A stretch of DNA of 63,121 bases, the filler included, from Olpidium bornovanus S191 (Eukaryota; Fungi; Olpidiomycota): assembly GCA_017911155.1 (NCBI GenBank). It is 29 parts of 29 records of this genome, joined end to end, with 100 filler letters (N's around TTAATTAATTAA, not from the genome) between each part and the next. Parts side by side here need not be neighbours in the genome. Positions count along the whole stretch, not along the records: positions 12,100 to 16,739 come from JAEFCI010000260.1; 28 more parts are not named here. One strand, 5' to 3'. Of this stretch, positions 1,607 through 16,841 are shown in pieces. The first letter of the stretch is position 1. Each line of letters begins with the position of its first letter. The position numbers and the translations under genes are program-made. Under the pieces are notes generated by a model that saw nothing but the letters and a program-made list of their open reading frames with translations, was not told the DNA's origin and searched no databases.

Positions 1607-3474
1607 ATGCCGGGAAGGCCGCGCCGGGACCAGGCGGCCGCCGATTCCGGTCCCGGTCACCTCCGCCGCTTTCATCACGCCCTGCGCCATCCGGCGATGC
1701 GGGCCCCGCCCCCCGGTGGCGGACCGCATCCCGTCGCCGTCACGTTTCCGCCCGAGCCGCTCGGCGGGCGCTCCGGGACGCCGAGCGGCGGAGACGAACA
1801 GCAGCCGCCCGCTCTGTCGGGACCCTGGGCGATCTCGGCGCCCGCGCCCGCAACGGCCGTCGGCGTGGAGAGCGCGTCGCCGTCTCCGCCGGGGTTTCCG
1901 ACCGCACAGGGGGCCCCGCATGCCCGCCCGGACGACGCGTCGAGCGACTTGCACCACGACCTCGCGGACAGCGGCCTCGGCCGTCGACGCTTTTCTTGGC
2001 ACGGCGGCATGCTCTCCTCGGCCTTCGCCGACGCATCGCGGCGCCAACATACCAACCAAGTTACGCAGCAGCAGCGGCAGGCCCTAGACCGCCTCGTTCT
2101 CCTTGACGACAACACGCCGATCACCACAGCGTTCGACGTTGTCAGGCGAAAGGCCGGCGTCCCGACCAGCCCGCTGTCGTTCCTGCAAACCTCGTCCGTC
2201 CTCCTCTATCTCGTCAACCGGCTGCCAGACACTGAGTTGCGCGTGTTCACGGATGCTGCCGCGGACGGCGCGAGGCTGGTGCCTCCGCGGACGTTGGACG
2301 TTTGGAAGATCGGAGGCAAGTTCCTCAAGCTTCGCATCAACGTGCAGCCGGACGGGACGTTCGAAGGGTGGAGGCCAAGAAGTACGCAGGTAGACGAAGC
2401 GGGAACGGGGTTTTCACGGTGCATCGTGCCAGGCTCAAACCCGGTCACGCGCGCGATCTGACGTTCCTGGCTTCGAACACGGCGTCGGTCAGGCGCGTCC
2501 CGTACAGGTCGACCGCGTCGCTGTCTGTTATTCGATGAAGACGGACACGTCGCGGTGTCGGCAGGGAGCCCGGGTCCTGAGAAGCCACGAGAGCCACACG
2601 CAGTCACCCACGCTGGTTTCGCAAGGCTGGATAAAACGACTTTTGCCGAAGCCCATCGGCACGGCTTCCATTGCCGTGGAGAGTTATATTCTTTTTGACG
2701 ACGGCGAGCATCCCTCGTCTAAAGGGCCGTTCCCAATCCTGTTGATATTCCGTGAGGTGGGATTTGGATCGTCGAGGCCCGTTTTGTTTTTGTTGGGGGA
2801 AACGTGAGCGCCGTTTTTTTTTAAAAAAAAAATCTCGGGTCTCTTTCCCATTCCTCGCCGTTTTTTAGACATCGACCCCGATTCCGGACCCTTCGGACGC
2901 CCGCAGCGTGCCGAGGCTGCACTTTCTCTCGCAGCATTTCCCGCTAGAACCGCAGCGGGAACCAGCGCTTGCCGAAATCCCGGCGCCCGCCCGGTGCAGG
3001 TCGGCCGGCAGCGCGGGCGCGTGCCGCCATGCGTCGCCCGCGCATTCACTCCCGGAGTTCTCCCCGCTGTCGCAGCTGTCGGCGGCCTCCGCCGGGGGCG
3101 GCGCGCACGAAGCCTGGGAAGGCTGCGCGGCGAGAGGGCCCGACTCGGTGCCGGCGTTCCGGTTCTCCGGTCCCGCCGGTGGCTGCCTGCCGCTCGTCGC
3201 GGGGATGACCGGCGGCGCGGGCCCGGACGGCGGCGGGCGGCCGGTTTCCTTCTTCCGCGCCGCTCTTTCCGAGGACGCTGCCGGCGAGTTCACCGGCGGC
3301 GACGACGACGACGACGACGCCGACGCCGACACCTACCGTGACCCGGCAGACAGCGCCGAGGAGCTCGTGCAGGCAGTCCGCCACCTCCGGCTGGAAAACA
3401 GCCTGCTCAAAGGCCAGATTGGCACCCTGCTCGGCGTGAGCCCGAGCGACGACCCTCCGGCGTACGACTACTGA
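1607..3474 (+). CDS. Three-exon hypothetical protein (exons ~1607-2389, 2508-2756, 2869-3474)
   Basis: Two GT..AG introns (2390-2507, 2757-2868), both phase 0, join three ORFs in frame. Short coiled-coil near the C-terminus (EELVQAVRHLRLENSLLKGQI). Confidence 0.7.
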
Positions 3475-3722
3475 ACGACGACATGGGGGGGAAGTCGCCG
3501 GGGGGGACCGATAGGGATTGATTCAGTGAGGTTCCCCTCCCTCCAAAAAAAAGTGAGGGGGGTGGGGCGTTATGCGGAGGTATCTCGAATCCATTTTATC
3601 GTNNNNNNNNNNNNNNNNNNNNNNNNNNNNNNNNNNNNNNNNNNNNTTAATTAATTAANNNNNNNNNNNNNNNNNNNNNNNNNNNNNNNNNNNNNNNNNN
3701 NNCCCCCCCCCCCCCCCCCGCC

Positions 3723-11999: not shown

Positions 12000-12427
12000 N
12001 NNNNNNNNNNNNNNNNNNNNNNNNNNNNNNNNNNNNNNNNNNNTTAATTAATTAANNNNNNNNNNNNNNNNNNNNNNNNNNNNNNNNNNNNNNNNNNNNC
12101 CCTCGCGACCAAGAGGCCGCGAAGCGAAGACCGAGAGGGGTGGCGGTGGTGCTTTGCGTCCGCGTCCGCTCCGGACACGAAAAAAAATAAAAAAAAAAAA
12201 AAAAAAGAAAAAGAAGGCTGTGCGTTTTCCCCTCCCTTCCACCCGGAGTCTCGTTCCTCGCTACAGACAAGGCCTTTCTCCGTACCGAAAGAGTGCGGCA
12301 GAAGCCTCCCCTCCCCCTTTTCCCCCGGCCGCCTAGTCCGTTTTTTATTTCTTTTTAAATTCAACCTTTTCTCCGCCTCTTGTTGTTCCTCCCGCGGGTT
12401 TTCTTCTTTTTTTCTATTCTACGGCAG

Positions 12428-14104
12428 CTGGCGACCCCGCACGTCCTCGTCTTCGCGTCGGCGTTGTACCTCTCTCATGCCCGGAGGGGCCTCGTCGACG
12501 CGGCGGCGCAGGCGGCGACGGCGACAACTGTGAGCGCGAGGCGGGCGTGGGGCGGAGACGAGAGGCGGCGCGTTGGGACGGTCCGGGGTGCCGCCGCAGC
12601 GGTCGGCGCCGCCGCCCCCTTCGCAGGCGCCGCTTCCCCTTCCGCAGGCGCCATCGCCGCCGAGGAAAATCGGCCGGGCGCGCGCGCGACAGCGGCGGCG
12701 CCGCAGCGGCGCGTCGGAGGAGGGGGAGGAGGAGGAGAAGACGTCATTGTTGATGCGGGGAACGCGGCCGGAATCTCTGGGGACGACGACTACCGGGGCG
12801 AGCGGCGGCCGGACGACGCCGCTCTGCCTGCGGCGCGAGCCCTCGCCGCCGCCGCCGCCGCCGCCGGTTCCGGAAACCTGTTCGAGCAGATCACGAAGAC
12901 TTTGTGGCCTGTCCGCGTCGGTGCCGCCCGGCGAGGTCGGGAGGCGGCCGGCGGCGTCGACGCGCAAGAGTTGTCTACTGCAGAGGAAGCGGCGGCGCCG
13001 CCGCCAATCGCCCTCGGGACCCCTGCGACCTTTCGCCCCCCCGGCGGACGGGAGCAGGAGGCCGCGGCGCAGATTCCGCGCGCGGTGTCCTTCAGCGCCG
13101 ACTGGATGTACGCCGACAACCTGTCGCAAATCCTCGCAACACTCTCCCCCCCGAGGGAAGGCGCGCCGTACGCGCATCCGCCATCTGCGACATCAATCGC
13201 CCCTCCCACCCGAGATGAAGGCCGGCGCGTGCTGGATCGCCCGCAGGAAGCCGAGTCTCAGGCAGACCTATTGTCGGACGTCGCGGCGAGCAGCAGCAGC
13301 AGCAGCAGGTCGACCGGCCTGTTCAAGCAGATAACGGCGCTTTTCCAACGCGCGCCGGAAGCGGCGTTTTTGCCCGCGGCGGGATGCAGCGCGCCGCCGA
13401 CGCCTCGGGTCGCCCCGCGCATGCCGTCTGCGACAGCGGCAGGAGCTCCGACGGGCCATATTCCGACGCCCGTTCCCAGGTTCAACGCTGACGCCCTGTA
13501 CGCGGATAACCTCACCGAAACCGTCGGAACCCTGGGCGGGGCGCCGGCTGCCGCGTCTCCCGCGGCCCCGCAACCGGCCTCGGCGCGCCAGAAGCGCACG
13601 CGGTCGGCGCTGGAGTGGTCTCGGGCGGTGAACTTGGCGCAGGACCTGGATGCCGTGAAGCGACTGGAGCGCGAGCTGGTCTCGGCAACGGGCCTGACGC
13701 ACGCAGAGCCGCGTGCCCGCCGCAGCCGTTCTTCTTCTCCGAAGGCCGTCGTCCGCGCGTGCAGGGTGCGCCTCGTGCTCCACCGGGACGTCCTGGAGGC
13801 CTACGTCCGTCTCGGCTCGTACGACGACGCCCGCCGCGCTTTCGAGAGGTTCAGACTCCAGGCCCTCGCGATCTTCGCCGCCCCACCGCCGCCACCCGCC
13901 ACCAGGGACTGTCTCGCAGATCAGGAGCGGGAGGCGTGCGCCCGCCTGGTGTCTGCGGGATTGTACACGTACGTGCAGTTCCTGTCCACCCGGGCGGCCG
14001 GCCGGCACAACCGCGAGATTTCGACCTTGCTTAAAGAGGCGTCCGAACTCGGTTTGCAACCGAGGAAGGAGGGCAGGTCGATGTACTTTCCGCCGTCGGA
14101 ATGA
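12428..14104 (+). CDS. Large exon of a PPR-like protein with low-complexity, internally duplicated N-terminal half (5' exon upstream or missing)
   Basis: Long ORF after a polypyrimidine/CAG acceptor at 12427. C-terminal VLEAYVRLGSYDDARRAFERF resembles a PPR unit. Confidence 0.6.
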   Translation: MATPHVLVFASALYLSHARRGLVDAAAQAATATTVSARRAWGGDERRRVGTVRGAAAAVGAAAPFAGAASPSAGAIAAEENRPGARATAAAPQRRVGGGGGGGEDVIVDAGNAAGISGDDDYRGERRPDDAALPAARALAAAAAAAGSGNLFEQITKTLWPVRVGAARRGREAAGGVDAQELSTAEEAAAPPPIALGTPATFRPPGGREQEAAAQIPRAVSFSADWMYADNLSQILATLSPPREGAPYAHPPSATSIAPPTRDEGRRVLDRPQEAESQADLLSDVAASSSSSSRSTGLFKQITALFQRAPEAAFLPAAGCSAPPTPRVAPRMPSATAAGAPTGHIPTPVPRFNADALYADNLTETVGTLGGAPAAASPAAPQPASARQKRTRSALEWSRAVNLAQDLDAVKRLERELVSATGLTHAEPRARRSRSSSPKAVVRACRVRLVLHRDVLEAYVRLGSYDDARRAFERFRLQALAIFAAPPPPPATRDCLADQEREACARLVSAGLYTYVQFLSTRAAGRHNREISTLLKEASELGLQPRKEGRSMYFPPSE

Positions 14105-14383
14105 CGGCAATGTTTTACGCTCCACGCTGTCCTCAAATGAGCGGCGCGCACCCTCTTACTGCAGACGACCAAAAAAAAAAAAAGAAAAGTGGACGAACGC
14201 CCCCTCTACCGGGATCTTGTTTTTGCGCGCTCCGTGTCATAGTCAAACCGATATCATAGTCTGCATTCCCGAATAAAAGCTGACTCGCATAACGCGGTGC
14301 TGGCCAGCGTTTCGGCGAGAGCGTAGTATGTATTTTTAATCCCGGATCAAAGCGCTGGTGTGGCGCGCTCCCGCGTATCCCGT

Positions 14384-15460
14384 TCAGAACAGCCTTCCTA
14401 TGAGGACGGGTATGGCCGTCTCCGTGCGCAGGATTCTCTTGCCGAGGGATACGCAGCGGAAGCCGATGCTACGGAGGAACGCAACCTCCTCCGGCACCCA
14501 CCCTCCCTCGGGGCCAATTGCCAGCACCGCGTTCCGGGATAACGGGAGACCCCGCGGGCACGTCGCGACGCTGTCGTCGCTGCTGACGCCGCCCGGCGCC
14601 GCGGGGCCGTCGTCGTCCGCGTCGGGCGGGTGCGCGACAAGCTTCGTGGCGGCCGCGAACCAAGAGTCAGGGTCGACCGCGCCGTCCAAACCGGCCAGGC
14701 GACCGACGACGGCGTCCCACGTGTCCAACATCACCAGCTGGGGCAGGACGGTGTCTCTGGCCTGCTCGAGGCCCAGGAGGAGCTGCTCCCTCACCTCGGC
14801 CGGGCGGAGTTTCGTCGCGGACCAGTACGAGCGCTCGACGCGCGCGGCGGCGACCAGGACCAGCCTCGGCACGCCCAGGCTCGAGACGGCCTGCAGCACG
14901 CGGTGCAGCACCTTTGGCCGCGGGAGGGCCAGGAGAAGTGTCAGCGGCAATTTGGGAGGGGGCTCGGAACGCAGCTCCAGGATTTCCAGCTCAACGTAGC
15001 CCGGGTTGCCTTGCCGATCCCCGCCGTCGGGTGCGCCTCCTCCGGCCGCCGGCACTGCTGCTCCTTCGGCGCTCCCGTCGTCGTCTCCGCCTCCCGTCCG
15101 GGAGACGACGACGGCGGCCTCGTCCTCCTTCTCCTCCTCCTCCTCCTCCCGCCCCTCGCCGGCGGCCGTGCAGGTTCTTGTCCCCGTCGGCGCGACGGTT
15201 CCTTTCCTCTCCCCCCCCCTCTTCGCCTTCTTCGTCTTCGCCGCCGACCCCGCCTTGAACTTCCTCACCGCCAACGGGGGTGGCGGCGGCACTGTCACCC
15301 GGGCGGTTCCCACGCGCCCGCCGATCAGGCCCACGCTCACGGTGTCCCCCCGTCCGGGCTTCAGCACCTCGGCGACGTGCTCGTACCTCCTTTCACCCGC
15401 CGGCAGCCTCGCCGTCGTCTCCGACACGAAGTCTGCCTTGCTTAGTATGATCAGGTTCAT
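14384..15460 (-). CDS. rsmE: 16S rRNA (uracil1498-N3)-methyltransferase RsmE, Pseudomonas-type, 358 aa, no intron in the coding region
   Basis: MNLIILSKADF..RRYEHVAEVL..GDTVSVGLIGG, PPPKLPLTLLLALPRPKVL.RVLQ..LGVPRLVL..RVERSYW, EQLLLGLEQARDTVLP, and SPOUT motif LAIGPEGGWVPEE..SLGKRILRTETAIPVLIGRLF*. Confidence 0.95.
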   Translation of the reverse strand: MNLIILSKADFVSETTARLPAGERRYEHVAEVLKPGRGDTVSVGLIGGRVGTARVTVPPPPPLAVRKFKAGSAAKTKKAKRGGERKGTVAPTGTRTCTAAGEGREEEEEEKEDEAAVVVSRTGGGDDDGSAEGAAVPAAGGGAPDGGDRQGNPGYVELEILELRSEPPPKLPLTLLLALPRPKVLHRVLQAVSSLGVPRLVLVAAARVERSYWSATKLRPAEVREQLLLGLEQARDTVLPQLVMLDTWDAVVGRLAGLDGAVDPDSWFAAATKLVAHPPDADDDGPAAPGGVSSDDSVATCPRGLPLSRNAVLAIGPEGGWVPEEVAFLRSIGFRCVSLGKRILRTETAIPVLIGRLF

Positions 15461-16841
15461 TGCCGGGGCTGTGAAAAGCAGGAGTAATGGGGGGAAGGGG
15501 GAGGGGTTGGAATCTGCCGGAGTCCGCCGCCGGGGCAGCAGACCGTTGTGAAGCAGGTGACGATCGACGAAAATCGGCGTCCGGAGGCGCGAACGCCAAG
15601 CGGCCGCCGTAAATGTTTCGCCTCGTTTACGGCAAGAATGATTTTTTTCGTTTTGGGACCGGCCTTTACCCCCGACGACGCGAGGGGAGGAAGGGGGCCG
15701 ACCGGCGACGGCGCGCGGTTTGACGTCAGGGACGGGAGGAGAACGGGAGGGCGGTGGCGGCGGGCGGCCGAGCGGCTGACGGGAACTCTCCGAAGGGCGC
15801 AAAAACCCGGCGGGTTGCGAAAAATCACACAGAAAAAGACCACCGGCGCACTTTTTTGTTGTTGTTGTTTTTGTTGTTGGTTACGTTTTGGCATCAGCAG
15901 GGTGCCTGGCATATCGGGCGGGCGGGCTGCCGGTCCGCGACCGCTCTCTCGGAATCAACCAGGTCAATCCTTTTCTTTTTTTTTTGTTTTCAACCCCCGC
16001 CGGGCGTTTGGAAAAGTGGCGCTGGAATTCCTTCTCTGCAACGGGTCCGCCTACGGGGAAGAGGAGAGACGTGGACGACGTGTGCAACCTGTGTGGGAGA
16101 GAGGAAGGAAGAAGTCGTCGCGGGCCGGCGGGTCCGGCGACAGATGGCCGCCGTTGCGGCGCCTGCGTGGACGCAATTAAAAAAAAATTTCGCTGAGACC
16201 AGGAAAGCAGGTCAAATTCCGCACCGAAAACCCAGCCCGTCGCGACACGGGGAGTCCGGCGCCAGTTTCCTCATGAACAAAACCGAGTTGTTTTACCAAG
16301 ACGCGCCTGCTGCCAAACCAGCCTGTTTCCGACATCGTATTCAACGTGGGAAACTGCGACGACAGGCATATCATCCTCCCCACAAAACGGTGGGTGTACT
16401 TTGAGCGCCAGAAGCTTCGAGCCGTTGAGCACAATCAAGTTAGGCAACCGCTGTCGAGAGAAATTGTCGGAAGGGATTGCAGGCGGAGCAAGATGGCGGG
16501 GGCTCGTGCTGCACGGTGGTGAGGAAGCGGCGTCACGAAACCGAGGGAGAAACCGTCCCCGGGCTCCCGGCGTTCCCTTCTCCGCCGCGCTTATTTGGTT
16601 TGGATTTTGAGATCCACAAATGCCTGGCCAAACTCAAAGCAGCCCAAAACAGCCCAAAACAGCAGCTGTCCTCGACCCAAATTCACGATTGTCGTCAAAT
16701 GTTTAGGTGTGTCGAAAACAGGCTGATTTGGGTCCAGTCNNNNNNNNNNNNNNNNNNNNNNNNNNNNNNNNNNNNNNNNNNNNTTAATTAATTAANNNNN
16801 NNNNNNNNNNNNNNNNNNNNNNNNNNNNNNNNNNNNNNNCG

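Follow-up and report, generated by a model that had tools for sequence, protein, structure and literature searches.

How a ribosomal RNA methyltransferase gene of bacterial type came to lie in DNA assigned to the fungus Olpidium bornovanus S191 is the question raised by the window analyzed here, a stretch of 63,121 nucleotides from assembly GCA_017911155.1 (29 parts of 29 records joined end to end with filler). Positions 12100-16739 of this window are the entire 4,640-bp contig JAEFCI010000260.1, in which the original prediction had recognized an intronless, full-length rsmE gene of Pseudomonas type and had proposed its horizontal transfer. RsmE has been regarded as almost exclusively bacterial, with few plant (plastid) members (PMC1829167). 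Our analysis indicates that the organism binned as O. bornovanus probably has here a real, transcribed nuclear gene without introns, which encodes a bacterial-type RsmE and was gained by horizontal transfer.

The coding sequence of this SPOUT methyltransferase of the RsmE family, COG1385, occupies positions 14384-15460 on the minus strand, where an ATG at 15460 opens a frame of 358 codons that ends with TGA at 14386-14384. As predicted, it contains no intron, and the frame is free of stops and gaps across its whole length; by our own base-composition estimate, a stop-free run of 358 codons has a chance of ∼1e-3 in DNA of 70% G+C. The product matches PF04452 (Methyltrans_RNA) with 96.7 bits (E = 1.4e-27, cut-off 23.9) and the RsmE family model TIGR00046 with 71 bits (cut-off 41), in both cases above the cut-off. 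Among the 23 NCBIfam RsmE-family models that match, the best is NF008700 (PRK11713.5-4), with 223.7 bits over two stretches, which is below its equivalog cut-off of 252 bits, partly since inserts divide the match. NF008700 comprises the second, tatC-linked paralogue of Pseudomonadaceae as well as proteins from Holophagaceae, Thermoanaerobaculia, Desulfuromusa and others.

The Olpidium protein aligns end to end with bacterial proteins of 235-237 aa, being colinear with the NF008700 proteins from MNL to RLF at about 50-53% identity outside the inserts, and shares with them the motifs PPxxLP-LALPRPK, LGLEQARDT, CPRG, GPEGGW and RILRxETA. The blocks named in the original prediction are all present: the initial MNL, the PPPKLPLTLLLALPRPK block, LGLEQARDTVLP and the terminal RLF line up residue by residue with the Pseudomonas-type proteins P0002 and P0003, with complete or almost complete identity. 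All 23 columns that are invariant in 21 subfamily members are kept, including GPEGG (G316-G320), E232 and Q233 of GLEQ, R342 and E347. Conservation of these columns across the subfamily shows that the gene is real.

The relatives of the protein were sought in several databases. A word-indexed protein search gave 6,018 matches, the best 119 of which, after the GenBank entry of the gene itself, are proteins of 231-240 aa; the named ones among these 119 are all bacterial, mostly from Pseudomonas and Thiopseudomonas, and also from Desulfuromusa, Holophagaceae and Acidobacteria. An exhaustive HMMER search was run over 1.84 billion representatives, and names were looked up for 30 of 150 representative matches. 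Apart from the gene's own GenBank entry and proteins of the fungus Saitoella, every named match was bacterial or an obvious contaminant. A search of the ESM Atlas returned bacterial clusters only, and a metagenome scan with fungal-specific patterns returned only matches of bacterial size with at most 49% identity and no closer relative. Since the nearest relatives are overwhelmingly bacterial, the gene appears to be of bacterial origin within the NF008700-type subfamily, and horizontal transfer, as originally proposed, is the best explanation.

The best non-self match of the HMMER search (P0121, 159 bits, 53% identity over the matched stretches) is XP_019022070 of Saitoella complicata, which has a 95% identical copy in S. 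coloradoensis. The gene of S. complicata is intronless and lies on a 348-kb scaffold between genes for a Lon protease, Costars, Erg28 and a BRO1-domain protein; its status as a genuine nuclear gene of a fungus is secure. The Saitoella proteins (XP_019022070 and BFZ63672, 'DUF558-domain-containing protein') belong to the same subfamily as that of Olpidium, and are likewise encoded without introns, keep the bacterial start and stop positions and carry no presequence. They differ in sharing 48% identity with it and in having their inserts at other positions, and the two have two rare residues in common. The best bacterial matches of Saitoella are from Holophagaceae and Thermoanaerobaculia, not from Pseudomonas. 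The earlier view that RsmE is not a fungal gene can therefore not be upheld, given these two homologues. Orthologues in other fungi, which had been named as possible evidence for vertical inheritance, thus do exist, although this refuting observation holds in a weak, patchy form rather than broadly: among the matches named, Olpidium and the two Saitoella species were the only fungal members found by sequence comparison. A search of the literature for RsmE or DUF558 in fungi and for horizontal gene transfer in Saitoella or Olpidium found nothing relevant.

When proteins of at least 265 aa were searched with the 482-aa GenBank model as the query, the only eukaryote-labelled matches were a Diplonema contaminant and a distant protein of Haematococcus. 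The former, P0271 (EukProt EP00659, Diplonema papillatum P004166), has 468 aa and consists of TatC fused to an RsmE-like protein. It nests inside Pseudomonas on a very short branch and mirrors the arrangement in P. putida (locus L066, 2210-3708), where tatC (2210-3004) and the RsmE homologue (3001-3708) overlap by 4 bp and a chemoreceptor gene comes after the homologue. P0271 is thus most likely a Pseudomonas contaminant that was read through by a eukaryotic gene caller.

Expression of the locus was assessed with the contigs of four public runs that could be placed on positions 12100-16739, including X1 (2025) and X4 (2022) from separate studies. In X1, a single contig of 3,387 nt is colinear with positions 12258-15648 and spans both RsmE and a convergent neighbouring gene, with no coverage past 15648. 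In X4, RsmE is covered by contigs at 14343-15286 (depth 7.4), 15262-15469 and 15472-15725, beyond which the spacer is uncovered save for one short contig at 16012-16166. The way in which coverage tracks the genes, together with the gene-specific depths in X4, points to RNA rather than contaminating DNA, and the RsmE gene is probably transcribed. Furthermore, the X1 contig, which comes from an independent study, rebuilds the linkage between RsmE and its neighbour, so that a chimeric assembly of fungal and bacterial DNA, which had been named as a possible refutation, is unlikely.

The run contigs also bear on where translation starts. On the minus strand, an untranslated 5' leader extends over positions 15461-15725, as far as the run contigs reach, and is colinear in X1 and X4. 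A short untranslated 3' region covers positions 14343-14383 on the same strand, with the X4 contig ending at 14343 beside an A-rich stretch containing ATTAAA. The polypyrimidine tract followed by CAG, from which an upstream exon had been deduced, is indeed found at 15471-15469, 8 nt ahead of the ATG. However, no joint that would indicate splicing at this CAG was seen in the contigs of the four runs, and X1 runs straight through it at a depth of 37. In X4, coverage is interrupted precisely at the CAG, between a contig ending at 15469 and another starting at 15472, with depths of 3.8 and 4.1; these similar depths and the straight X1 contig suggest a chance break in coverage. A minor spliced form or an upstream exon is conceivable, the run contigs stopping at 15648 and 15725, but finds no support in these data. 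Going upstream from the RsmE ATG, no other ATG occurs within 433 nt, the nearest being at 15894, 434 nt away, and the RsmE ATG itself has an A at position -3. Since there is neither an upstream ATG in these 433 nt nor a splice at the CAG, translation from the ATG at the bacterial position is the simplest reading.

The N-terminus that results from this start looks unlike a mitochondrial presequence. Residues 1-30 include four acidic and four basic residues and are modelled as a confident first beta strand of the PUA-like domain, and the sequence gives no sign of a targeting peptide. The upstream coding exon with a targeting peptide, as originally envisaged, thus finds no counterpart in the colinear contigs or in this in-domain N-terminus. 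The GenBank model (P0001, 482 aa) adds 138 N-terminal residues by way of a 38-nt intron and an out-of-frame upstream ATG at 15912, and drops 14 codons of the largest insert as a 42-nt intron (15206-15247). Neither of these introns is removed in any of the run contigs, and the additional 138 residues are probably an annotation artefact.

A number of observations weigh against our interpretation, and they concern the phylogeny of the protein, the assignment of the contig and the constraint on the gene. With respect to phylogeny, the Olpidium protein was recovered as sister to that of Saitoella by FastTree with 246 rows (support 91) and by IQ-TREE under LG+C20 with 99 rows, in both a quick (support 89) and a careful analysis (ultrafast bootstrap 98, SH-aLRT branch test 91). 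Support was only 78 in a quick IQ-TREE analysis with added taxa, which marks the fungal clade as soft. In all trees, the fungal pair was placed outside the well-supported Pseudomonadaceae, on a weak backbone beside sequences of Holophagaceae and Thermoanaerobaculia type, and when one of the two fungal lineages was removed, the other remained on the deep backbone, outside Pseudomonas. The protein phylogeny that had been called for as a check of nesting therefore supports a bacterial subfamily, but its maximum-likelihood (ML) position is with Saitoella and not within Pseudomonadaceae.

These trees also bear on the alternative that Olpidium recently received the gene from a rhizosphere pseudomonad, in which it would be the second, tatC-linked RsmE paralogue. 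Pseudomonads are common on roots, NF008700 is the best NCBIfam model, and the top bit scores in a search of 90% clusters were those of Pseudomonas, Thiopseudomonas and Stutzerimonas (171-182 bits). Moreover, a tree in which Olpidium was constrained to group with Pseudomonadaceae was not rejected by the approximately unbiased (AU) test (p = 0.181), which counts against our placement. The constrained tree was nevertheless 36.5 log-likelihood units worse, and the FastTree, quick and careful ML trees all place Olpidium outside Pseudomonadaceae, as did a tree lacking Saitoella. The identity to Pseudomonas proteins (50-52%) is no higher than that to proteins of Acidobacteriota and Holophagaceae (52-53%), and at only ∼50% identity the transfer would not be recent. 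In addition, Olpidium has RTETA and xGRL as found in proteins of Acidobacteriota, whereas Pseudomonas has RVETA. We therefore consider a recent transfer from a pseudomonad unlikely, and these sequence comparisons do not favour Pseudomonas as the particular donor. The match to the second Pseudomonas paralogue that had been noted in the original prediction holds at the level of the subfamily; an origin in Pseudomonas itself is not supported by the ML trees, though it is left possible by the AU test.

Whether the genes of Olpidium and Saitoella go back to one common fungal origin or to two independent acquisitions is about evenly balanced. The grouping in the trees is to be set against an identity of only 48% between the two proteins, which is no higher than that to bacteria. 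Shared derived residues were also considered as a sign of a single fungal origin, and this line was rejected: only two rare ones were found, no more than are shared with random bacterial rows.

An ancient, organelle-derived eukaryotic RsmE, passed on by vertical descent and since lost from almost every fungus, would be a further explanation for two distant fungal lineages carrying the gene and grouping in the ML tree. Algal RsmE-like proteins with transit-peptide-like N-termini do exist (P0324 of Haematococcus lacustris, KAL6756033, and P0315). In Arabidopsis, AT1G50000 is a putative plastid RsmE, and chloroplast 16S rRNA has been found to carry 3-methyluridine (m3U) at the position equivalent to U1498 (bioRxiv 10.1101/2024.06.14.598963). 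Like the Olpidium gene, these plant and algal genes are eukaryotic nuclear genes for a bacterial-type RsmE, and the plastid homologue serves a bacterial-type ribosome. However, the algal-type proteins form a separate clade with deltaproteobacterial-type proteins, apart from the fungi, and Olpidium has no plastid and its protein no N-terminal extension. A presequence is missing from both fungal proteins, proteins of at least 265 aa and the top matches of either fungal query yielded no other eukaryotic homologue, and many independent losses would be needed. Vertical inheritance is thus hardly tenable. P0324 and P0315 have LTT(E/T)S in place of LR(V/T)ETA and, in the sampling used, do not cluster with a cyanobacterial group.

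The assignment of the contig to Olpidium likewise calls for caution. The assembly was made from non-axenic zoospores of O. bornovanus washed from cucumber roots, its contigs were binned by tetranucleotide composition with VizBin, and contigs with a non-fungal best match were discarded unless a fungal DIAMOND match at 1e-30 was present as well (PMC7865070). The Saitoella homologue probably explains how the contig cleared this filter. The assignment hence comes down to binning and to recurrence in runs that share one organism label, and the contig is only 4.6 kb long, with a neighbouring open reading frame (ORF) that has no identifiable eukaryotic homologue. A further reservation is that X1 and X4 are labelled 'RNA?', their library type being a guess.

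The neighbouring gene is a transcribed region at 12221-14299 on the plus strand, convergent with RsmE, which is left without annotation in GenBank and contains a low-complexity ORF of 574 codons (12380-14104) rich in Ala, Arg, Gly and Pro. In X4, it is covered by one contig (12221-14299) at a depth of 18.7, compared with 7.4 for RsmE. The codon-position pattern of G+C supports the frame only in the last ∼170 codons, where it resembles that of RsmE. The convergent ORF noted originally is thus real, but its supposed pentatricopeptide repeat (PPR) character was not confirmed: the ORF matches no Pfam family, the best hit (TPR_14, E = 0.069) being under threshold, and its ESM Atlas score of 0.83 is under the useful range. 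X1 carries an in-frame deletion of 3 nt in a TTC repeat at position 13729 of this gene. No further ORF on either strand of the 4.6-kb piece matches Pfam, and no TatC is encoded there; in this the Olpidium locus, which has no other recognizable bacterial gene either, differs from those of the NF008700 proteins. Long tracts rich in A/T homopolymers and CAA repeats lie in the spacers at 12154-12240 and 15840-15880 and flank both ends of the two-gene unit. Base composition was also tried as a sign of foreignness and discarded, given that the G+C content at third codon positions is 0.85 in RsmE and 0.79-0.85 in the neighbouring ORF and would be similar in Pseudomonas.

From these data it could be argued that the contig is not fungal at all but was mis-binned, its source being a bacterium or some other eukaryote present in the root wash. 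The assembly was binned from a metagenome by composition, the Saitoella homologue alone would let the contig pass the authors' similarity filter, and none of the neighbouring genes can be shown to be fungal; the metagenomic protein P0173, moreover, has a similar low-complexity insert in the same loop. Yet 4.6 kb with one recognizable gene and a spacer of about 1.3 kb without a recognizable gene upstream of it do not correspond to bacterial packing, and G+C is ∼70% in the coding regions compared with ∼52-59% in the spacers with their tracts rich in A/T homopolymers. The sequence recurs in runs from five studies under one identical organism label and is faint in soil metagenomes, and the exhaustive search gave the fungal protein from Saitoella as the closest one. 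Such mis-binning therefore seems improbable; the contig context is non-bacterial, yet not demonstrably fungal.

As to constraint, the Olpidium protein differs from the NF008700 proteins by three inserts, together about 115 residues and without a bacterial counterpart, and by the replacement of the subfamily motif RFxPFVED. Insert 1 (15020-15289, minus strand; residues ∼58-147) is a low-complexity loop rich in G, A, E, P and K within the N-terminal PUA-like domain. It corresponds to an alignment gap in all 20 relatives compared, falls below 50 in the predicted local distance difference test (pLDDT) at residues 78-149 and is retained in the contigs of both X1 and X4. Insert 2 (14672-14692, minus strand; residues 257-263) was delimited by alignment, with low pLDDT at 259-265, and insert 3 (14573-14623, minus strand; residues 280-296) is an acidic, Gly-rich loop ahead of the conserved CPRG, with low pLDDT at 291-295. 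The metagenomic homologues P0173 and P0131 carry independent insertions of 50-55 residues in the PUA-like domain, at the very loop that holds insert 1, indicating that this loop tolerates insertion in several lineages.

Outside the inserts, which are its low-confidence parts, the AlphaFold2 model reaches pLDDT values above 90 at residues 1-60 and 150-358, and the predicted structure consists of an N-terminal PUA-like beta domain followed by a SPOUT alpha/beta domain. In a Foldseek search of the PDB, the best 28 matches all belong to the RsmE family, with target-normalized template modelling (TM) scores of 0.53-0.75, and full-length matches such as 5vm8, 1vhy, 4e8b and 4j3c, with target TM scores of 0.72-0.75, rank first. 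E. coli RsmE (YggJ, PDB 4E8B), the 16S m3U1498 methyltransferase, has in common with the Olpidium protein PF04452, TIGR00046 and the PUA-like and SPOUT fold (Foldseek probability 1.00, target TM 0.73). It differs in belonging to another subfamily, the structural alignment showing only ∼15% identity and the sequence comparison 23 bits.

X1 and X4 depart from the reference coding sequence at five places, and every one of these changes is nonsynonymous: A261V (14679), R224T (14790), G93R (15184), G82V (15216) and I46L (15325). Together with the divergence of RFxPFVED, they indicate that constraint on RsmE may be relaxed, which again counts against our interpretation. These data and the large disordered inserts would be expected of a decaying relic, that is, a transferred gene that is still transcribed while its methyltransferase activity is no longer selected. 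However, the frame of 358 codons is intact, the 23 subfamily-invariant columns, including the SAM-loop GPEGG and GLEQ, are all kept in spite of ∼50% divergence, and the core fold is predicted with confidence. Three of the five changes are inside inserts and two are at variable columns, and by our own estimate five of five nonsynonymous differences have p ∼0.24 under neutrality, so that they say little on constraint. We regard a relic as very unlikely.

The history that would best account for these findings is as follows. An RsmE-like gene would have passed from bacteria to a fungus, out of a subfamily that includes the tatC-linked Pseudomonas paralogue and proteins of Acidobacteriota and Desulfuromonadales. 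The transferred gene would have retained the conserved motifs, together with the start and stop positions seen in bacteria, and would have gained three disordered inserts. The Saitoella gene may either share this origin with Olpidium or stem from a separate transfer from similar soil bacteria. Translation most likely starts at the ATG in the bacterial position, and a protein made from this start would lack a classical N-terminal mitochondrial presequence.

By analogy with the characterized E. coli enzyme (PMC9508554, PMC1829167), the protein would act as a dimer that binds S-adenosyl-methionine (SAM) in its knotted C-terminal domain, while the PUA-like N-terminal domain would dock on the nearly mature small ribosomal subunit. 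The methyl group would then go from SAM to N3 of a decoding-centre uridine that is universally conserved, the predicted target nucleotide being the equivalent of E. coli U1498, with the proviso that E. coli RsmE belongs to a different subfamily.

To our knowledge, no biochemical target has been established for the tatC-linked RsmE paralogue of Pseudomonas. The sequence around U1498 is conserved in both mitochondrial and cytosolic rRNAs, and with a presequence lacking in both fungal proteins, either compartment is conceivable. The mitochondrial small subunit is the foremost candidate, at somewhat less than an even chance; the cytosolic small subunit on the one hand, and another RNA or an inactive protein on the other, are each possible to a lesser and equal degree. 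We know of no record of m3U at the decoding-centre uridine of eukaryotic cytosolic small subunits. That the enzymes of Olpidium and Saitoella reside in the cytosol or nucleolus and place m3U on the decoding-centre uridine of 18S rRNA is a doubtful proposition. If true, it would mean that a bacterial enzyme has been recruited to retune the eukaryotic decoding centre.

Interdomain transfer is already known, as are nuclear RsmE genes in plants. What is new here is the occurrence of a bacterial-type RsmE in the nuclear DNA of fungi, secure in the case of Saitoella and probable in that of Olpidium; the gene is thus patchily distributed in fungi rather than a single import from Pseudomonas. Our results are also of use for genome curation, as the 482-aa Olpidium model in GenBank has no support from the run contigs and the Diplonema entry in EukProt is most likely a Pseudomonas contaminant. 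The finding would add a ribosome-modifying enzyme to the genes that fungi took from bacteria, and it raises the testable question of whether the mitochondrial or the cytosolic ribosome is the substrate, for which Saitoella, being culturable, offers a practical system.

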